Positions 14,114 to 40,109 of a stretch of 64,000 nt of DNA are shown in pieces. The translations under genes were made by a program, and so were the position numbers. Numbering within the stretch: position 1 is the first letter of the stretch; each line of letters opens with the position of its first letter. The stretch covers positions 186,001 through 250,000 of the IMG/VR virus record IMGVR_UViG_3300046516_001816, one strand, 5' to 3'. Under the pieces are notes generated by a model that saw only the letters and a program-made list of their open reading frames with translations, was not told where the DNA came from and searched no databases.

Positions 14114-14515
14114 GTGGACAACGTGGAAAACATTACCCTTCCGAGCGATGCATCGGGCGACGAGATTCTGGAAGCCCTGATCGAACAGATGGAAAGTCAA
14201 TCGCTGGCTGAGCGCTTTGACGAGTTTGTCACCACCGCCGTGATGACGGAAGACGAGCTGGATGAACTGCCTGAGGTCCCCACGGAGGCCGACTTACCGG
14301 GCTTTTACGTGATAGCACGGGTAACGACTGTGGATATTGGCGCGCAGTTGGACGTGAAAGGGATTGTGATCTCGATCTGGCCAGCGGAAGAACGCGAGTA
14401 CACGGACGACCTTCCTGCGGATCTGGATAAAGATCGCCACTGCCGCTTTTTGACGGTGAGCGATGAAGGGTTGATCGACGAAATGTACCTGTTACCGAAG
14501 TACACGCTGCACTGA
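14114..14515 (+). CDS. Hypothetical acidic protein
   Basis: GAGG RBS; GTG start. Confidence 0.65.
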   Translation: MDNVENITLPSDASGDEILEALIEQMESQSLAERFDEFVTTAVMTEDELDELPEVPTEADLPGFYVIARVTTVDIGAQLDVKGIVISIWPAEEREYTDDLPADLDKDRHCRFLTVSDEGLIDEMYLLPKYTLH

Positions 14516-14602
14516 TGAAAACTTACTGGCTAGGGGTATGCCTATGGGCGTGTCCCTAGCTCTTATGCCTTAAGATACCTAAACCAAGGAAACAAAAGCA
14601 TT

Positions 14603-15001
14603 ATGATGAATGTGAACCAACCCGATGACCCGATGCCCGAAACTGGGACGGCGCTGGACTTCGGCGCGCAACTCGGGGAGTTGATTAACAATCCGGCGAT
14701 CGCCCACGAGCTCGCCGAGAAGCTGGGCGCGGCAGTCCAGAAGGCTGTAAAGGATCTGGACGCGCTGTATCCGGAGCCGCACGTGCAGCACACCTACATG
14801 CTGCAACCGGGCACCTTTACCCTGCGCGGGGAAACGGTCCATGGCTTTAAGCTCACGATGAGTATCGTGGCTCAGGAAGACAGCGTCGAGCGCGGCACGC
14901 ATTACTATCTCGCGCTGAACAGCACCTTCGATCACGTGAAGAGCCTGGCACGTGAAGACGAGATTCAGGAGTGGAAGCTCGACCTTCCGAATCAAGCGTA
15001 A
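14603..15001 (+). CDS. Hypothetical protein
   Basis: TAAACCAAGGA leader. Confidence 0.7.
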   Translation: MMNVNQPDDPMPETGTALDFGAQLGELINNPAIAHELAEKLGAAVQKAVKDLDALYPEPHVQHTYMLQPGTFTLRGETVHGFKLTMSIVAQEDSVERGTHYYLALNSTFDHVKSLAREDEIQEWKLDLPNQA

Positions 15002-15041
15002 GGCAAACCAAACTAACCACTAAACCAAAGGAAAATAATCC

Positions 15042-15476
15042 ATGAAGAAACCGACCGACATCATGCTGCTGCGCAGCGACAGCACGGGCATCGCTGGCAC
15101 CATCGCCAACGCCCAACACCACGCGCAGCACATCCTGCCGTTCATCGATGCGATGAAAGACGCGGTGAAATACCTCGGCTTCAAGCGCTGGAAGCAAGGC
15201 AACAACGTACACCAATTCATCACGCACGAGAACCGTACGCTCGTGCTGCGTCCGATCTGTAACGACGGGCAGTCGCCGTTTTACTGCGGGGTGCGCCTCG
15301 CGCTCAAACTTGGTCGCACCTCGACCGACGAACACCGTCTGATGGAAATCACCGATCCCGCAGAAGTGCCCCGCATGCTGGAAATGATGCGCGCTTTTGC
15401 TGAACCGCGGAAGGGTCGCCTCAACTCCGGCCATGAAAAGACGATGGCCGACGCCGCATTGAAAAAGGCTGCATAA
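15042..15476 (+). CDS. Hypothetical protein
   Basis: TAAACCAAAGGA leader; followed by a hairpin. Confidence 0.7.
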   Translation: MKKPTDIMLLRSDSTGIAGTIANAQHHAQHILPFIDAMKDAVKYLGFKRWKQGNNVHQFITHENRTLVLRPICNDGQSPFYCGVRLALKLGRTSTDEHRLMEITDPAEVPRMLEMMRAFAEPRKGRLNSGHEKTMADAALKKAA

Positions 15477-15541
15477 ACGCAGCCCTCGGGCGGGGTGGCC
15501 ACTCCGCCTTTTACAACACTAAACCAGGAATAAACCGGACC

Positions 15542-15922
15542 ATGAACCAAGTCGTACACAGCCGGATCTACGGCACCGATCTGAAAGAGATCGTCCCGAA
15601 CAAAGAGCTTTTCAAGAGCGTGGGTATCTGGATGACGAAGATGCTCAAGCAACTCAACCGGAACGTGGCGTCGCTGCCGGGGGTGAACCCGGCTGACAGC
15701 AATATCAGCACGCACTGTCTGCCGATCGTGATGACCCACGAGGAGCAAATCCATCGCGGCTGGTGTCTGGATATCTCGGCGCAGGTGAATAACGGCCTGC
15801 GGGTGCAAGCGCTCTGTTTCCTGCGCGCTGGCGACGACGGCTACACGGCGGTCGAAATCATTGACCCGAACCTCGTGTCGGAGTGGAATTACGTCAACCA
15901 AACCGTCCCGGAACTGGCATGA
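15542..15922 (+). CDS. Hypothetical protein
   Basis: CTAAACCAGGA leader. Confidence 0.7.
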   Translation: MNQVVHSRIYGTDLKEIVPNKELFKSVGIWMTKMLKQLNRNVASLPGVNPADSNISTHCLPIVMTHEEQIHRGWCLDISAQVNNGLRVQALCFLRAGDDGYTAVEIIDPNLVSEWNYVNQTVPELA

Positions 15923-16943: not shown

Positions 16944-17183
16944 ATGAAAGATATCGTAGAAGCACTGAAAGCGCTCACCGCTTCGATTGCAGCGGTCGAC
17001 AAAGAAACGCAAAAAACCAAACGGGCGATTTCCCCGGCTGAGGCGAAGGTCATTACCCAGATGCGTAAGGAGCTGCGCAGCCTGCGTAAGGACTTTATCA
17101 AAGTCTGTACCTTGCCGGCGACCCAGGTCGCGAAAATCTTCGGCATCTCCGAGTCTCGGGTCTATCAGATCCGCGGCGAGTAA
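16944..17183 (+). CDS. Small helix-turn-helix protein
   Basis: C-terminal ATQVAKIFGISESRVYQI HTH; TAAACCAAGGA leader. Confidence 0.65.
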   Translation: MKDIVEALKALTASIAAVDKETQKTKRAISPAEAKVITQMRKELRSLRKDFIKVCTLPATQVAKIFGISESRVYQIRGE

Positions 17184-17204
17184 CACTGACTGACGGCATA
17201 AACG

Positions 17205-17228
17205 GGGAGAGCTTCGGCTCTCCCTTTT
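17205..17228 (+). terminator. Intrinsic terminator just upstream of the array promoter
   Basis: GGGAGAGC-TTCG-GCTCTCCC followed by TTTT. Confidence 0.85.
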
Positions 17229-17253
17229 GTGCTACTCATTCTTTTTTTGCCCG

Positions 17254-17261
17254 TATATTAC
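17254..17261 (+). promoter_or_regulatory. phiKZ-type early promoter TATATTAC upstream of the TIGR array
   Basis: Exact match to the phiKZ early promoter consensus, 18 nt upstream of the first repeat. Confidence 0.65.
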
Positions 17262-17278
17262 TACTTTGAAGCTGAGGC

Positions 17279-19378
17279 TTTGAATCATTTTTCATAACTC
17301 ACCCATCAGGAGCAAATGTATCACGAGATCCAGGCTTCCAATATATAAGAGTGTGGCAAATGAAAGCAGTCGCACACCGAACGGAAACGCACCCTGTTGT
17401 TTAGTCACCCAAACCAAACCAGTGTATCAAAGCGATTCATGCACCCAGCTCGCGCAGTGTATCAATGAACTTCAGGCATCCGGGTACGGAAGTGCGTCGA
17501 ATCCATCACGCTCCCATCGTGGATGAGCGCGTCGACAGGGAAAATCCACCCAATGCAAGCTGAGCGCATCAACGATGTAAACTCACCCGATTCAACGTAG
17601 TGAGATAGAGAGACCAACGCCCCCACGAATCGTTAGCGTGTCATAGACGTTGAGTCGCCCAATATGTAGCAGCGTACCATGTGATAATAGTCACCCTTAA
17701 AGGACAAGTGCGTCAATAGCAAAGTGTCCGCCAGTTGAAGTCAACGTATCAAGGACAACCGCCAGTCAACCAGCTGTGAAGAGTGAACTTTCAAGAAGAG
17801 GCGCCCAGAAGGGGTCAGTGTGACAGGGCAGATAAGTCACCCATCGTTTCGAACTGAGTCAAGAACATGTGAGCCTACCGGGTTAACATGCGTACCATGG
17901 GGCGAGCGTCACCCATTTAAGTTCAGTGTGTCATACGGCAAATGTAACCCAAATAGATTTCGTAGTGAAGCAATGGATAGAAGGCACCCAATGTCTACGA
18001 TTGTATCAAAAGACTAGCTCCACCCAAGGTCTTCTAGTGTATCAATCTGGTATTGCCGACCATAAGTGGGCCAGTGCGCCAAAAGACGAAAGTAGTCCAG
18101 CAGGAAGTAAGTGTAACACGAGAGATATGACGTCCATACTCAACAACTGTGTCACGCGTGTCAGTCGTCCAGACAGGTAAAGTGCATCACAGAAACTACT
18201 TCCTCCAGTACGAAGAAGTGGATCAGTCCGTGCGCAGTCACCCATAGAGCATGAGTGTTTCAGAAGGGTTCAATGCAACCGATGTAGTTGAGTGCATCAA
18301 GCCGCATAGCGACACCCAAAGATGATGAGTGTATCAAAAGACCTAATTTTTACCCATAGACTAGGTGTGTATCATTCCGAAGCAGTCACCCAGTGAACAG
18401 TAATGTATCAAGGTAGGACGATGTCGCCCAGCGATTCGAGTGTAGCACGGTAGATGTGTCATCCAGAACAGGTATTTGTATCAAATAGCATAGTCATCCA
18501 GAGTGGACCAGTGGATCAGAACCATTGATTCAACCGAACGACCCAGTGCAGCAAAGGAGTCTAGTCGCACAGTAGTCGCATTGCAGCAACATTGCACAGT
18601 CCCCCATATCGTCCGATTGTATCAAAACTTGTAATGCCTCCAGTAATACTTAGTGTAGCAATCTGCTCCAGTCACCCATTGTGATAGATTGTAGCAAATG
18701 AGGATAGCCACCCTATGTGAGCAATTATATCAGCAATCATAAACCCTCCATAGTTAGCTAGTGGATCAAGGTGTCTATGTCACCCAGATCGACCCAGTGT
18801 AGCAAAGAACGGGAGTCCACCGCAAAACCGATTTGAACCAAAGTTATTACGCGCCCAAAACATGGAAGTGGGTCATGGAGAAACATTTCACCCAGCCCCG
18901 TTGACCGTATCAGTCTGCAAACTTCACCCATTGTAACACAGTGTATCATTGTAGGGTAGTCACCCGGAATCCTAACTGAACCAGAGACAGGAAGCCGCCC
19001 GATTAATAACAGTGTATCAACCTGAACATGTCGCCCAGATTGTCTTAGTGTATCAAAGTACGCACTGCATCCATTGAAATTCAGTGTATCGCAGTTGTAG
19101 AGTCGACCATATCTGGAAAGTGTAGCAAGATGGATTAGCCTTCCAATCCAGGAATGGAATCAAGTGCAACAAGCCACCCGTCGTAAGCTAGTGTATCAAT
19201 CACGCAAATCCACCCAACCAGTATTAGTGTATCAGTGCATTGAATTCCCCCATTGGAGAGAAGTGTATTAAGGTCCGAAAGTCCAGCAAATCGTAATAGT
19301 GCATCAGGGTTTTACAGTCACCCATCGTGCTCATGTGTATCAATCATCATCAGGCACCCAGAGTAGTTCAGTGTCAAC
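17279..19378 (+). repeat. TIGR-like dual-repeat array (~58 units of ~36 nt) encoding putative tigRNA guides
   Basis: Alternating degenerate 9-nt repeats AGTCACCCA and AGTGTATCA separated by ~9-nt unique spacers, e.g. 17403 AGTCACCCA-aaccaaacc-AGTGTATCA-aagcgattc; no credible ORF; abuts a Nop-domain gene. Confidence 0.9.
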
Positions 19379-19407
19379 AAACTAAACCAAACCAAGGAAA
19401 CTGTATC

Positions 19408-20652
19408 ATGACGACGCAACTCACTCCCGCATATAACCCCAACCTGGCTGTGATCCGCACGATGGTGCGCTCGGCCTACGATATGCAGGATCTGCGCATT
19501 CAGATGGGCAACCGTGTGACGGCTAGCTTCAAGGCCAAGCTCGGATTGCGTCAAGACGGCATGAGCGAGAAAGAGCTCGAGAAGCAAGAGAAGGGCATCC
19601 TCGATCAGCTGCGCGTGTCCTATCGTCGTATCACCGACGGCGTCGTGGCCGAACACGGCGAAGACATCAAAGCCGGCAAGCTCCCCACGGAACGCAAGTT
19701 CCAGGGCGACCAGTTGATTAGCCACTACAGCGAACTGCTGCTGGTGGATAACTACATGGCGACGCTCGCCAACGAACAACATCACTTCAAGGATATGGAA
19801 AAGATCCTGAAGAAGATCCCCATCTACACGGAATTCCTTACCGGTATCCGCGGCGTCGGTCCTGCCATGGCCGGCATCATCATTTCCGAAATCGACATTC
19901 ATAAAGCCGAATACCCGTCAAGCCTGTGGAAGCTCGCAGGGCTGGACGTGGTGTATATCGGGAAGTACACCGACGGCGAAGGCAAAGAGAAGACAATCCG
20001 CGGCTGGGACGTCGACTCGTGGTTCAATGACCCGGCCAACGAAGGCAAACAGTATCTGGCTGAAGGCAAGTACCCGGTGACCTACGAGGCCGTCGGCCGC
20101 TCGCGCAAGGACTTCTGTTTGGTGAAGAAGGAGTACATCAATAAAGAAGGGGAAGCCGCGCAACGTGACTCGATTACGTTCAACCCGTTTCTGAAGACGA
20201 AACTGGTGGGCGTGTTGGGCACGTCGTTTCTGCGGGCCGGCATTGCCAATGTCGATGGCAAGAAGTGCGGCGGGGCATCGCGGTTGGAACTCGCGAAGGA
20301 AGAAGGGTTCAATCCGAAGGACTACCCGGAGATGGAAGAGGACCAGGCCGTGATCGTCTATCTGCGTGCGAAGGGTCATGACGTTGTGGTGGAGCCCAGC
20401 AAGTACGCCGTGATGTATGCGGATTACAAGAACCGCCTGAACAACAACCCGAAGCACCGGGACAAAACCGCGCTGCACAAACACAACATGGCCATGCGCT
20501 TTATGGTCAAGCGTTTCTTGGTGGATCTGTACAACGCATGGCGGCGTCTGGAAGGCCTGGTGGTCGCCCCCGAGTACTCGGAAGGTGTGCTGGGTAAGGT
20601 GCACGGTCAAGCGAAGGAAGCCGGCTGGCAGCATCCGCGCTTCTCGCTGTAA
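19408..20652 (+). CDS. tasA: TasA-like Nop-domain RNA-binding protein (IS110/Nop superfamily, no nuclease domain)
   Basis: Coiled coil IRTMVRSAYDMQDLRIQMGNR; FLTGIRGVGPAMAGIIISEI; SSLWKLAGL; NPFLKTKL; C-terminal HKHNMAMRFMVKRFLVDLYNAWRRLEGL; no RuvC or HNH; directly downstream of the array. Confidence 0.85.
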   Translation: MTTQLTPAYNPNLAVIRTMVRSAYDMQDLRIQMGNRVTASFKAKLGLRQDGMSEKELEKQEKGILDQLRVSYRRITDGVVAEHGEDIKAGKLPTERKFQGDQLISHYSELLLVDNYMATLANEQHHFKDMEKILKKIPIYTEFLTGIRGVGPAMAGIIISEIDIHKAEYPSSLWKLAGLDVVYIGKYTDGEGKEKTIRGWDVDSWFNDPANEGKQYLAEGKYPVTYEAVGRSRKDFCLVKKEYINKEGEAAQRDSITFNPFLKTKLVGVLGTSFLRAGIANVDGKKCGGASRLELAKEEGFNPKDYPEMEEDQAVIVYLRAKGHDVVVEPSKYAVMYADYKNRLNNNPKHRDKTALHKHNMAMRFMVKRFLVDLYNAWRRLEGLVVAPEYSEGVLGKVHGQAKEAGWQHPRFSL

Positions 20653-21801: not shown

Positions 21802-22623
21802 TTACAGGTCAGAAAGAATCACCCAGAAGTCATCGGCGAGTTCCGGATTCAGCATGTACTGATAGGGCAGCCAGAAGCAGCCCGGGTTCGCGGGATCGCC
21901 CCACTGGTCGCCCCACGAATTCCGCACGAGGAAGCATTGCTTCGCATTGTCGTAACCGACGACGAGTACCGCGTGACCGCCCAGACAGTTTTCATACTGC
22001 GTGGGCATCGGCACGAAACCCGTGCGCGCGACTTCATCCGATTCGAAGGCATCGAAAATCTGGATGCCGACGATGATCGGACGATTGAACACCGCGAGCA
22101 CGTGTTGGAAAGCTTCCAGCGTTTGCGGCACCGCCTGGTACTGCAACGCCTTGTGGTTCAGCCCTTCGGCGTAGGATTCGACCGTAGGCTTGACCTTGAA
22201 GTGTTCCGTGTCGTCGCTGTACGGCCACGTGCTCTCCAACGGTGCACCGAACTTTGCGGCGACTTTGACGACGTCACGGATTTCACCGCCTGCGTCTTGA
22301 TCGACGTCACCTTCGAGGTCACGTTCGTTGTAGTAGAGGAACAGGCGCGACAGTGCTTGCGCGACGTTCGTACCCGTCTGAATGTTTTCTTCGTATTCCA
22401 GTGCACCGGCTGTGGCGTTCGCCGTGCACGAACCGAGCTGTCCCTGGTCTTTCACCGGCGAGCAATGCGCCGTGAGGTTCACCGAAGCCGGGATGGCTGC
22501 CGCGCCGAAGGTCAGATGGCCGTGGTACACATGGTCACGACTGTCGGCGGTTTTCTTTTTACGCTTATAAACGCGCGTGACCACCTTCTTTTGGGGTTCG
22601 GCGTGGTGTGGGGTATGCTGCAT
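21802..22623 (-). CDS. Papain-like C1A cysteine peptidase
   Basis: VKDQGQLGSCTANA (catalytic Cys), GGHAVLVVGYD (His), RNSWG (Asn). Confidence 0.92.
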   Translation of the reverse strand: MQHTPHHAEPQKKVVTRVYKRKKKTADSRDHVYHGHLTFGAAAIPASVNLTAHCSPVKDQGQLGSCTANATAGALEYEENIQTGTNVAQALSRLFLYYNERDLEGDVDQDAGGEIRDVVKVAAKFGAPLESTWPYSDDTEHFKVKPTVESYAEGLNHKALQYQAVPQTLEAFQHVLAVFNRPIIVGIQIFDAFESDEVARTGFVPMPTQYENCLGGHAVLVVGYDNAKQCFLVRNSWGDQWGDPANPGCFWLPYQYMLNPELADDFWVILSDL

Positions 22624-38696: not shown

Positions 38697-40109
38697 GTGA
38701 AAAACGAACTCACGATCAGCAAATTGATGATGATGGAAATGCCGGGTTACCGTGAGCAGTACCGACGTATCTATACGGGCTCGGGTGATCACGTCGGGAT
38801 TCACCAGTTCGCTGAAACGATCAATACCCTGGATGACGTCGAAGTCACCGGGGCGATCGCCGCGCAGCACGTCCACAAAGTGTTGCGCTTTGCGGACCAA
38901 CCCGAACCGAGTGCGCCGATTCCCTTTGGCTGGGACGCGCCACGGTATTCGTTCTTGCTGGTGGTGGAAACGAAAACGCCGATGGGCAGCAAAGAGATCA
39001 CGCATCTGGCTGGTTACACCGACCGCGTGGCGCCGATTGGCGAGCTGGAGTTTCATATCAACAGCACAGCGACCTGGCGAGAAATGCCTAATCGCGACGG
39101 CAGCGGCTACACGCTCATGTCGCAAGATCACCTGCACATGGATCCGAACGGTCAAGCGCTCTCGGGCGGGAATTACTCGGAGTTGATGCGCCCGAAGGAT
39201 ATCTTCTCGCGGCTGTCGCTGGGTGACGGACTGGCCATGGAAGAGGTGATCGATTTGCGCACCCGTGTCTCGGCGTATGCGACGCGTTCGGACCGCTACA
39301 ATGTCGTGCCGTCGGCGTGGCTTTCCAAGCTGGTGGAAGCATATCTGTCGGCGCTGCAAGATGAACTGGCCGCCAATGAAAGCACGGGGCTCTGGCACGT
39401 GTGTCAGGTTCACGCTGAAGAAACCCCGATCCGTTACAATCCGGTCCTCAGTGCCTTGGCGCAATTGGCAGCCAAACAAAACGGCACGTTCACCTTCGAC
39501 GATCTGAAACTCCTCGATAGCGAAGTCGCTGAGAAGACGACCGTTGCCAACCAGGGTAGTGATGACGCCAATGCAAAACTGATCTACTCGAACAATTATG
39601 AGGACTGGGACGTCGCAGTCGGGGAAGGCGAAGTCAGTCACGCTACGATTGCTTATGCGGCTGGCATGGCGTTACCACCCGTGATGAATGAGGCGGGGTT
39701 GTCCAGTGCGCATTTCGTGGTGCTGTATTCGCCGGACAGTCCGGCGAGCGTCGAAGTGCGCATCATCACAGTGAGCCCGATCTTTGCAACAAGCGATCTG
39801 AAAGCCGCGATTGATTTGTTTGTGTACGAGTTTGAAACGCTGGTCTTGCCGCAACTCGCGCCGCGCGATTACGAAGGCATCGAAACGTTGTTCCTCGAGA
39901 TCGACGCGGATCTCTACGGCACCACTGCGGTACGGGTGGCGCTGGATAAGCCCGAGAACACCAAGACGTTTTTGTTGCCCTCGTTTGCGGATTCGCTGCT
40001 GAGCCCGCTGCTGACCATCGAAGCCTGCAACACCACCAAGGACTTTATGGATCTCACGATCCTCGCCCGGGAGCTGGAAGCCGGACTGTCTCGGTTGACG
40101 GTGAAGTAG
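38697..40109 (+). CDS. Large hypothetical jumbo-phage protein
   Basis: TAAACCAAGGA leader; 470 aa. Confidence 0.7.
   Translation: MKNELTISKLMMMEMPGYREQYRRIYTGSGDHVGIHQFAETINTLDDVEVTGAIAAQHVHKVLRFADQPEPSAPIPFGWDAPRYSFLLVVETKTPMGSKEITHLAGYTDRVAPIGELEFHINSTATWREMPNRDGSGYTLMSQDHLHMDPNGQALSGGNYSELMRPKDIFSRLSLGDGLAMEEVIDLRTRVSAYATRSDRYNVVPSAWLSKLVEAYLSALQDELAANESTGLWHVCQVHAEETPIRYNPVLSALAQLAAKQNGTFTFDDLKLLDSEVAEKTTVANQGSDDANAKLIYSNNYEDWDVAVGEGEVSHATIAYAAGMALPPVMNEAGLSSAHFVVLYSPDSPASVEVRIITVSPIFATSDLKAAIDLFVYEFETLVLPQLAPRDYEGIETLFLEIDADLYGTTAVRVALDKPENTKTFLLPSFADSLLSPLLTIEACNTTKDFMDLTILARELEAGLSRLTVK

Follow-up and report, generated by a model that had tools for sequence, protein, structure and literature searches.

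TIGR-Tas systems were described by Faure et al. in 2025 (Science, PMC12045711). In their dual-repeat TIGR-TasA form, exemplified by the FpTasA locus of Flavonifractor plautii, edge and loop repeats of 8–12 nt alternate with spacers of about 9 nt in a unit of 36 nt, and the edge repeats at the array ends are truncated. Both repeats start with the box D 'UG' and end with the box C 'CCA'. The array, usually of 5–15 units, adjoins a single gene for a Nop-domain protein that has a coiled coil and no nuclease domain, and such loci are phage-borne. TasA was reported to act as an RNA-guided transcriptional repressor in reporter assays, and the degeneracy of TIGR repeats as such has already been stated (bioRxiv 10.64898/2026.09.09.750476). 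How the arrays gain spacers and what their natural targets are figure in the literature as open questions on these systems. The locus considered here is a known kind of system that adds useful evolutionary detail.

The window analysed, a stretch of 64,000 nt (positions 186,001 to 250,000 of IMG/VR record IMGVR_UViG_3300046516_001816), is part of a 285-kb jumbo phage genome that carries a 58-unit TIGR guide-RNA array before a nuclease-free Tas gene. Coordinates below are window positions, and all features lie on the plus strand. As defined by the parse, the weight matrices and the information content, the dual-repeat array (17279..19369) is built of units comprising an edge repeat of 9 nt, spacer A of ~9 nt, a loop repeat of 9 nt and spacer B of ~9 nt, ~36 nt in total. 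The best explanation of the locus, to which we assign a probability of roughly 0.85, is a dual-repeat TIGR array that is most likely co-transcribed with a TasA-type gene and whose guides would direct DNA binding without cleavage. A previous sequence-only reading had called the array box C/D-like, and its position next to a gene for a Nop-domain Tas protein bears this out. The locus shares with dual-repeat TIGR-TasA the alternating repeats, the spacer and unit lengths, the truncated terminal edge repeats, the lone adjacent Nop-domain protein and the phage origin. It differs in having 58 units, in lying upstream of tas and running into it without a terminator, in repeats that match their consensus in only 10–15% of units, in a C instead of the box D G in the loop repeat, and in a Tas protein whose conserved Nop segments have roughly 100 additional residues between them.

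The autocorrelation of 17279–19378 peaks at lag 36 (0.364; mean 0.253, sd 0.024) with echoes at lags 72, 108 and 18, and three control regions have no comparable peak. Dynamic programming with two 9-nt weight matrices resolves the region into 58 edge and 58 loop repeats in alternation. The chain score is about 1100, as compared to a mean of 18 and a maximum of 134 in thirty shuffles and to 10–100 in other regions of the window. The unit periods (n = 57) are 36 nt in 33 cases, 35 nt in 13, 37 nt in 8 and 38–39 nt in 3. The spacing of 35–37 nt proposed earlier is found in 54 of the 57 periods, with exactly 36 nt in only 58% and a deviation from it in 42%; the six repeat strings that the same reading quoted as examples are all present. 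Spacers of 9 nt occur in 43/58 units for A and in 45/58 for B. Tandem Repeats Finder, applied to the whole window with a minimum score of 30, reports nothing within the array, as expected of an element said to be missed by standard repeat finders, and a generic repeat search of the array yields families 60–75% identical and nothing closer. Rfam gives only chance-level matches at E ≤ 1 and none below E = 0.1, and the minimum-free-energy fold of the first 1.2 kb of the array is uninformative. A scan of the 285-kb genome with a fixed matrix found one such array only. A candidate second array near window position 40000, which had a chain score of 102 with an iteratively refitted matrix, was rejected, since the fixed-matrix scan showed overfitting. 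In the parse, the edge repeat at the array start, TTTGAATCA, looks 5′-degenerate, while the terminal one (19370..19378; parse and unit tables) is 3′-degenerate, AGTGT being followed by unrelated bases. The latter supplies the 3′ half-site for the last guide, and it is identical in the relative L003 and near-identical in the relative L014.

The scarcity of exact repeats, pointed out in the sequence-only reading, is real: the edge consensus AGTGTATCA occurs exactly in 9/58 units (mean identity to consensus 0.82) and the loop consensus AGTCACCCA in 6/58 (0.76). The weight matrices, a check which that reading had proposed, reveal strongly position-specific conservation. In the edge repeat it is highest at G4 (57/58), C8 (55/58), A9 (53/58), A1 (52/58) and T3 (49/58), and in the loop repeat at C8 (58/58), C4 and C7 (55/58 each) and A9 (47/58). 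Edge G4, C8 and A9 and loop C4, C7 and C8 are nearly invariant, and all 18 spacer columns hold about zero information (0–0.3 bits). The edge repeat contains U3 G4 and ends in U/C-C-A; the loop repeat ends in C-C-A and has C4 where the box D 'UG' would have G. 'AG' at positions 1–2 is common to both. Plotting conservation along the array for polarity, also suggested earlier, gave a divided answer. Toward the 5′ end of this array, irregularity increases in both edge repeats and unit lengths (rho −0.35, p 0.006 for the edge repeats), and the trend is also significant in the relative L004. It is not significant in six other arrays, so polarity is not a general rule.

What looks like degeneracy is in part a constraint that acts between repeats. 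Among 251 units from 7 arrays, position 6 of an edge repeat and position 3 of the next one are A-U 212 times, G-C 24 times, G-U 10 times and other combinations 5 times (98% paired vs. 90% after shuffling, p<5e-4). Position 7 and position 2 of the next edge repeat are U-G in 156, U-A in 31, C-G in 31, G-U in 14 and A-U in 3 units (94% vs. 80%, p<5e-4). Controls within the same repeat and between edge repeats k and k+2 are null. The signal also holds within the array of the window alone and, for positions 6 and 3, in Ralstonia phage phiRSL1 (p=0.0025). In an independent count on a gap-free alignment of 142 units, the observed covariation score was reached by 0/500 shuffles. Each 36-nt guide therefore keeps its own terminal helix, and this helix of 2–3 bp is kept in each mature guide through compensatory change. 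The loop repeat offers a possible G2-C7 pair in only 53–60% of units, and this pair does not covary. In the stem-loop TIGR arrays (PlTasA, PateTasR) the unit ends likewise pair, with bases that vary by unit and stay complementary, but the helix here is of only 2–3 bp and no linker separates the units.

The repeats look degenerate because few bases, taken to be protein contacts, are fixed (edge A1, G4, C8 and A9; loop C4, C7, C8 and A9), because edge positions 6/7 vary jointly with 3/2 of the next edge repeat, guide by guide, and because the remaining repeat positions drift. The earlier proposal that selection acts on the motifs and on length only was correct in so far as selection bears mainly on a small set of repeat positions together with unit length. 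It was incomplete in that edge positions 2, 3, 6 and 7 vary as compensatory pairs and in that the spacers of homologous units are conserved. The core bases and both pairs are intact in only 34/58 units, and the expected motifs, pairing and 9+9 spacer lengths come together in only 22/58; some guides may be defective. These 22 units, along with the greater irregularity toward the 5′ end, would suit a decaying relic of a once regular TIGR array, with drifting repeats in a system that no longer works. We regard this as very unlikely, given that core positions are 90–100% conserved next to spacers devoid of information, that compensatory covariation is kept, that the degree of degeneracy is the same in all eight related arrays, that shared guides retain 18/18 spacer identity across phages and that dN/dS of tas is about 0.05, a value that points to strong purifying selection on the gene (window vs. 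L003: dS 0.74, dN 0.04).

The covariation bears equally on whether an RNA is involved. The sites concerned are 32 nt apart on one strand and combine by Watson-Crick and G-U rules, which is a signature of RNA. Regular periodicity would also be displayed by an array that acts as DNA, such as protein-binding sites of the iteron or centromere type, or by a 12-codon coding repeat, and a gene for a small 79-aa helix-turn-helix protein lies just upstream (16944..17183; from the ORF list and translation, with weak helix-turn-helix matches in Pfam and PHROG; mentioned for context only). Neither possibility accounts for pairing on one strand, no ORF of more than 84 aa crosses the array, units of 35 and 37 nt break any reading frame, and in every relative the array is coupled to a Tas gene in the same orientation; an element without RNA is scarcely credible here. 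We prefer the TIGR reading, with the array as a source of guide RNAs.

Homologous loci number roughly 1,800. Seven relatives and phage phiRSL1 have equally degenerate arrays adjoining their tas genes. Relatives are present in two soil metagenomes as DNA contigs only, and a search of RNA runs for the sequence of the window gave no match. In phiRSL1, ORF034, annotated as a 'transposase', is a Tas homologue (30% identity, E 3e-48). The 1.4-kb gap that follows carries no annotation but contains a degenerate array of 36–37 units on the strand of ORF034, downstream of tas and not, as here, upstream of it. Its repeats conserve AG at positions 1–2 and CC at positions 7–8, whereas position 9 is free, again unlike here. 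The comparison of related arrays that the sequence-only reading had recommended reveals whole-unit indels together with conserved spacers in homologous units. Unit comparison shows that unit 39 (18652..18687) is identical in both spacers (18/18 nt) to L003 unit 10 and L004 unit 17, although its place in the array order differs between arrays. The edge and loop repeats of the L004 counterpart are each one base off those of the window and L003, which are identical to each other. In the tas-proximal block of units 50–58 (19047..19369; comparison with L003), units 50, 51 and 54–58 are 97–100% identical to L003 units 33–39, these seven collinear units differing at 6/252 nt. The L003 array, collinear in other respects, lacks units 52–53 (71 nt; 19119..19189; contig joint and unit tables). 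The joint (19118->19190, with 6 ambiguous bases) falls inside AGTGTA, which is shared by two edge repeats. A recent recombination tract, and not constraint, could explain why this block is nearly identical to that of L003; divergence of tas between the two phages increases from 7/150 nt at the 5′ end of the gene to 30/150 nt in its middle. Where units can be matched through one identical spacer, 1–9% of the sites of the second spacer differ, as against 8–15% of the repeat sites. The repeat differences fall mostly at edge 2, 5 and 7 and at loop 1, 2, 3 and 5, with zero at edge 4 and loop 7 and 8. Homologous units of different phages thus have spacers better conserved than the non-core repeat positions, despite the dS of tas. 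Since the spacers of units common to phages are conserved, the unit under selection is the 36-nt guide and not the repeat.

Close relatives differ in most of their units, and phages with Tas proteins 93–94% identical have about a quarter of units in common, with whole-unit indels. The picture of an old array under purifying selection accordingly needs amending: selection on repeat positions and length is evident, yet the array is not simply old when only about a quarter of units are common at that Tas identity. In 8/8 arrays, the similarity of neighbouring repeats does not exceed that of random pairs, which leaves no trace of CRISPR-style copying of the adjacent repeat and agrees with the earlier view that the array does not grow by exact repeat duplication. 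Array content turns over as recombination within edge repeats adds or removes entire units.

The likeness to CRISPR is in the general plan: a repeat-spacer array adjoins an effector gene, a long precursor is cut into guides (here predicted), and related arrays have part of their spacers in common, with unit indels between them. However, the repeats here are of 9 nt, of two kinds and 76–82% identical to consensus, as opposed to the near-identical CRISPR repeats of at least 23 nt, each guide would have two spacers reading opposite DNA strands, and Rfam finds no CRISPR-DR match in the array. An adaptive memory of the CRISPR type, with polar addition of a spacer pair and a copied neighbouring repeat, could draw on the many units that differ between close relatives, and so must have been gained, and on the conservation of the tas-proximal end, which resembles a CRISPR trailer end. 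Several observations make it highly improbable. Apart from the dissimilarity of adjacent repeats, the units present in a single phage (52–53; L003 units 40–41) lie between shared units and not at one end, degeneracy polarity is inconsistent among arrays, no integrase, Cas1-like or reverse-transcriptase gene occurs within about 5 kb of the array, and no cas-like domains are found among its neighbours.

A terminator-like GC hairpin closing the upstream gene (17204..17225; terminator scan and leader comparison) is preceded by the motif CGGCATAAA, which recurs at the same place in relatives. It is followed by a T-rich leader with CTCATTCTTTTTTT ... TATATTACT (17235..17262), which leader comparison also finds in the closest relative, L003. 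This leader is a putative promoter of the array; a sigma-70 consensus was not found in it. At the other end, sequence, terminator scan and tail alignment define a tas 5′ UTR (19379..19407) with the ribosome-binding site AAGGAAA at 19394–19400. The terminator scan detects no terminator between array and tas, and the array runs into the ribosome-binding site; co-transcription therefore seems likely. In the relative L001 a terminator is present after the array.

The tas gene (19408..20652) encodes a TasA-like protein of 414 aa, as judged from a phmmer search of the PDB, an AF2 model, Foldseek and a family alignment. Its N-terminal region is a coiled coil of three helices. A Nop-type RNA-binding domain follows, expanded by a beta-rich insertion (about residues 181–350, ~170 residues), and Y390/H399 lie in a C-terminal loop. 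Phmmer retrieves TasH (E 5.7e-9) and TasR (9mty; E 2.2e-7). With the AF2 model (pLDDT 84.9), the top ten Foldseek matches are all TasH/TasR at probability 1.00, and IS110-family recombinases and Nop5 come next. Pfam gives only a weak Transposase_20 match, and a language-model look-alike search with the ~170-residue insertion returned unnamed viral clusters only. Neither Pfam nor the AF2 model reveals an HNH or RuvC domain, residues 11–134 forming three long helices, and the protein is therefore TasA-like. The best match in both sequence and fold is SpTasH of Salicola phage CGphi29 (PDB 9W03, 21KL; PMC13421893), also of phage origin, although identity across the aligned folds amounts to only about 15%. 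An N-terminal HNH nuclease is part of SpTasH, and its spacers are of 8 nt; the present protein lacks a nuclease domain, and the spacers of its array are mostly of 9 nt. Both proteins possess a C-terminal loop with a Tyr/His pair, and that of SpTasH cuts the precursor autonomously (PMC13421893). Y390 is conserved in at least 90% of 45 homologues and aligns with SpTasH Y289; H399 is invariant among them and is three residues off SpTasH H296 in the pairwise alignment. By these alignments, the protein keeps the Y/H processing dyad. The loop is absent from the stem-loop TIGR clades, in contrast to its presence here.

Published biochemistry of the family suggests how the locus may work. Cleavage inside every edge repeat, for which the Tyr/His dyad of Tas itself is the probable agent, would divide the long transcript into about 58 guides of about 36 nt. 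A guide would begin with the 3′ half of one edge repeat and end with the 5′ half of the following one, with spacer A, the loop repeat and spacer B in between. Bound by a Tas dimer, it would recognise DNA through both spacers: A would pair with one strand, and B, over an adjacent 9-bp segment, with the opposite strand. As the protein has no nuclease domain, the expected outcome is binding, not cleavage: sequence-specific occupancy of foreign DNA, of the host or of competing elements, that may block transcription or replication. The design recalls the box C/D small RNAs of archaea and eukaryotes, with Nop5 or Nop56/58: predicted in common are the Nop-domain dimer, the pseudo-symmetric RNA and its two short guides between short conserved boxes; Nop5 structures are among the weaker fold matches of the Tas protein. 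Unlike these RNAs, the array has no RUGAUGA/CUGA K-turn boxes in its weight matrices and no L7Ae or fibrillarin partners, and its predicted target is DNA, not RNA.

The spacers are AT-rich (43% GC vs. 57% in the genome), and the 3′ ends of the two spacers of a unit are complementary in 42% vs. 25%. AT-richness is frequent in promoters; together with the block of early-looking small genes around the array and the repression by TasA proteins in reporter assays, it could indicate a temporal programme in which the guides repress promoters of the phage's own genes. The target geometry, spacer A joined to the reverse complement of spacer B, was deduced from published 3′ overhangs, and self-targets were sought with all four A/B joinings on both strands of the 285-kb genome, with shuffled-pair controls. 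None of the joinings exceeds the controls. Spacer A with the reverse complement of spacer B gives no match with two or fewer mismatches, and the 14 matches at three mismatches are not in excess of the 8–24 in controls, so regulation of the phage's own genes seems very unlikely. With the target 18-mer of unit 39, the most conserved guide, 4 scattered and unrelated matches were obtained in 185,579 genomes, with no signal among them, and 0 matches in IMG/VR. Within the preferred TIGR reading, foreign DNA is the expected target. A joint interpretation of these data can be offered tentatively, at odds clearly short of even. The edge 'repeat' would be two half-sites of neighbouring guides, intact 36-nt cassettes would be lost, gained and exchanged, and the array would be an inherited library of ~60 fixed DNA-binding regulators directed at conserved sites of hosts or competitors, not an adaptive memory. 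If so, the complementarity of spacer 3′ ends would reflect a rule by which targets are chosen or cassettes arise.

For annotation, it follows that such arrays need to be detected by motif and period. The unusual length and internal variability of these arrays make constraints readable directly: they show which repeat bases matter and that each guide has terminal pairs of its own. phiRSL1, whose host (Ralstonia) is known, has been cultured; its Tas gene is annotated as a transposase and its array has been left unannotated, and its presence in the family makes experiments in a native context possible. In general, the locus and its relatives show that shared guides are retained between phages in which synonymous substitution is near saturation, and that turnover proceeds by whole units.

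The window carries a TIGR (tandem interspaced guide RNA) array with a nuclease-free Tas gene, a system of a family already known. Its two alternating short repeats, ~9-nt spacers, 36-nt unit, and degenerate first and last edge repeats match the dual-repeat TIGR arrays as Faure et al. 2025 (PMC12045711) described them. Earlier publications already call TIGR repeats "regular but sequence-variable" and note that CRISPR finders miss them. Autocorrelation of the region 17279-19378 reveals a sharp peak at a lag of 36 nt (0.364 vs. a background of 0.253 ± 0.024), with further peaks at the multiples 72 and 108 nt and at half the period, 18 nt; control regions give no comparable 36-nt peak. Dynamic programming with two 9-nt weight matrices parsed 58 edge and 58 loop repeats in alternation at 17279-19360, followed at 19370 by a closing repeat reduced to AGTGT. 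The chain scores about 1100, whereas shuffles average 18 and never exceed 134. A fixed-matrix scan of the whole 285-kb genome, one contig in which the window spans bases 186001-250000, found this array and no second one.

The edge repeat (consensus AGTGTATCA) is exact in 9 of 58 copies and the loop repeat (consensus AGTCACCCA) in 6 of 58, with mean identities to the consensus of 0.82 and 0.76, respectively. The weight matrices show strongly position-specific conservation: A1, T3, G4, R6, C8, and A9 are conserved in the edge repeat and C4, C7, C8, and A9 in the loop repeat, and the information in all 18 spacer columns is about 0 bits. The unit period is 36 nt in 33 cases, 35 nt in 13, 37 nt in 8, and 38–39 nt in 3. 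The sequence-only reading had proposed a degenerate array here that standard repeat finders would miss. Autocorrelation, parse, and positional conservation agree on the array, every example string it gave is present, and Tandem Repeats Finder reports nothing in this region.

The spacers are A-rich, with 43–44% GC (17279-19369) vs. 57% for the genome. Spacers A and B both show a weak, pseudo-symmetric bias directly after box C, positions 1–2 favouring A/T and position 3 favouring G (~40%). Unit 56 (19262-19297; units are numbered toward tas) has broken core positions in both repeats (AGTGTATTA, AGTCCAGCA), and these repeats are identical in L003, the closest complete relative. Spacer B of unit 4, AACCAAACC (17412-17420), reappears exactly at 19385-19393 in the tas 5′ UTR, before the ribosome-binding site; this is probably chance, since only one half-site is involved and this spacer shows no conservation in L003. 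Between the upstream gene and the array, at 17187-17225, a conserved CGGCATAAA motif is followed by a GC hairpin, and both occupy the corresponding position in relatives L004, L007, L008, and L009. In some relatives the array begins directly after the hairpin, without an AT-rich leader.

Related arrays were fetched from metagenomic loci L003–L009 and L014 (Tas 74–94% identical), together with L001 (Tas 50% identical) and the cultured jumbo Ralstonia phage phiRSL1 (L002, Tas 30% identical). Six metagenomic arrays were distinct and long enough for comparison (L003, L004, and L006–L009; L005 duplicates L004). They have the consensus and degree of degeneracy of the window's array, with identity to consensus of 0.76–0.92, and the phiRSL1 array, whose consensus differs somewhat, is just as degenerate. 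The degeneracy is therefore a family trait and not the decay of a single copy. In phiRSL1, the array of 36–37 units fills an unannotated 1.4-kb gap (L002:7055-8376, about 14258-15579 of the record) after ORF034, a "transposase" that is a Tas homologue. L001 has only 4–5 units (L001:5780-5967) with well-conserved repeats, the loop AGTAAACCA occurring three times, and a clear terminator ahead of tas; its degenerate first edge repeat, TTTGAATCA, is the same as that of the window's array.

Mutual information over 251 units singles out two column pairs, both linking successive edge repeats. Edge position 6 and position 3 of the next edge repeat form A-U in 212 units, G-C in 24, G-U in 10, and other combinations in 5 (98% paired vs. 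90% in shuffles, p < 5e-4). Position 7 and the next position 2 form U-G (156), U-A (31), C-G (31), G-U (14), and A-U (3), with 94% paired vs. 80% (p < 5e-4). The same positions give no signal inside one repeat or between repeats k and k+2. The covariation is also present in the window's array taken alone, and that of the 6/3 pair in phiRSL1. A separate, independent count, made on 142 units aligned without gaps, agrees: 0 of 500 shuffles reach the observed score, and slid controls fall below it. In 87% of units, edge position 5 pairs in addition with the next repeat's G4, as U-G or C-G. These pairs connect the 5′ and 3′ ends of one predicted 36-nt guide, the end-to-end arrangement that the published TasR structure has for the edge repeat. 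About 60% of the edge-consensus mismatches in the window's array lie at covarying positions, 24% at position 5, and 16% at core positions. Covariation is absent from the loop repeat, whose possible G2-C7 pair occurs in only 53–60% of units. Each 36-nt unit is under selection as an RNA.

The spacers are also under selection. In unit pairs picked because one spacer is identical in both, the other spacer differs at 1–9% of sites and the repeats at 8–15%. Almost every repeat difference falls at edge position 2, 5, or 7 or loop position 1, 2, 3, or 5, and edge position 4 and loop positions 7 and 8 have none. Three phages share both spacers of unit 39 without a change (18/18 nt); the unit's place in the order differs in each array, and in L004 one base is changed in each repeat. 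Internal duplicates in two arrays likewise have identical spacers and altered repeats. The initial proposal that selection acts on motifs and length only is thus borne out for the conserved core repeat positions and for unit length; edge covariation and selection on the spacers go against its "only".

Between the window and L003 (Tas 93% identical), tas has a dS of 0.74 and a dN of 0.04. In the seven tas-proximal units (50, 51, and 54–58; 33–39 in L003), 6 of 252 nt differ. A recent recombination tract over the 3′ block of the array may explain this near-identity, and the comparison should be read with that caveat: tas divergence climbs from 7/150 nt at the 5′ end to 30/150 nt mid-gene. Whole units are gained or lost: units 52–53 (71 nt) are missing in L003, two L003 units are missing in the window, and the indel joint falls within an AGTGTA common to two edge repeats. 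In L014, a unit-51-like unit is directly followed by a unit-58-like one. Upstream of this block, more diverged homologous units (4, 11, 12, 15, 24, 33, and 46) form a collinear scaffold and most units have no counterpart. Growth by repeat copying had been doubted from the outset, and in none of eight arrays do neighbouring repeats resemble each other more than random pairs do. Near the array, no gene like an integrase or Cas1 was found.

The tas ORF (19408-20652, 414 aa) starts 30 nt beyond the array and matches Tas in sequence and fold. Its product hits the solved TasH and TasR at E values of 5.7e-9 and 2.2e-7, respectively. The best ten PDB matches of an AlphaFold model (45 homologues in the alignment, pLDDT 84.9) are TasH or TasR chains, all with probability 1.00; IS110-family bridge-RNA recombinases and archaeal Nop5 come lower. 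Since neither Pfam nor the model reveals an HNH or RuvC domain, and the N-terminal 134 residues are predicted to form three long helices, the protein is, as modelled, TasA-like, i.e., of the Tas type without nuclease. Precursor cutting by SpTasH, the TasH of Salicola phage CGphi29, uses Y289 and H296 (PMC13421893), and such a Y/H dyad is characteristic of dual-repeat TIGR clades. The counterparts are Y390, at least 90% conserved among the 45 homologues, and H399, which is invariant but offset by three residues when the two proteins are aligned pairwise. A confidently folded beta-rich insertion (residues ~181–350) between conserved Nop segments makes the protein about 100 residues longer there than SpTasH; a search for look-alikes gave no named relatives. 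PHROGs and the phiRSL1 GenBank record name the protein family transposase.

About 1.2 kb downstream of tas lies a papain-family cysteine peptidase gene (21802-22623, minus strand), found at the same place in L004–L007, L009, and one relative listed without DNA. L004, L005, L007, and the relative without DNA also have a lytic transglycosylase gene upstream of tas; in L009 such a gene is downstream. L008 has a tubulin/TubZ-like gene (L008:8684-9679) 1.4 kb downstream of tas, which fits a jumbo-phage background.

Guide-by-guide compensatory pairing within one array, better conservation of spacers than repeats, documented whole-unit indels, an array of 58 units, the ~100 extra Tas residues, and the finding of this system in the cultured phage phiRSL1 may not have been described before. 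No terminator was found between array and tas, so they are likely co-transcribed. By analogy with the literature, the precursor would be processed by the Tas Y/H dyad and the guide bound by a Tas dimer, with spacers A and B reading opposite DNA strands. The complex would bind DNA without cutting, as other TasA proteins do, which repress transcription (bioRxiv 10.64898/2026.09.09.750476). In 42% of 258 units (17279-19369 and L002–L009; 50% in phiRSL1), the last base of spacer A is the Watson-Crick complement of the last base of the unit's spacer B, against an expected 25% (permutation p 0.0002), and no other combination of positions shows this; the published target geometry puts these two bases side by side at the target centre. 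With targets taken as spacer A plus the reverse complement of spacer B, deduced from published 8-nt 3′ overhangs, the phage's own genome gave no match above control and the most conserved guide nothing meaningful in two large collections. This phage system therefore presumably targets DNA of the host or of competing elements.
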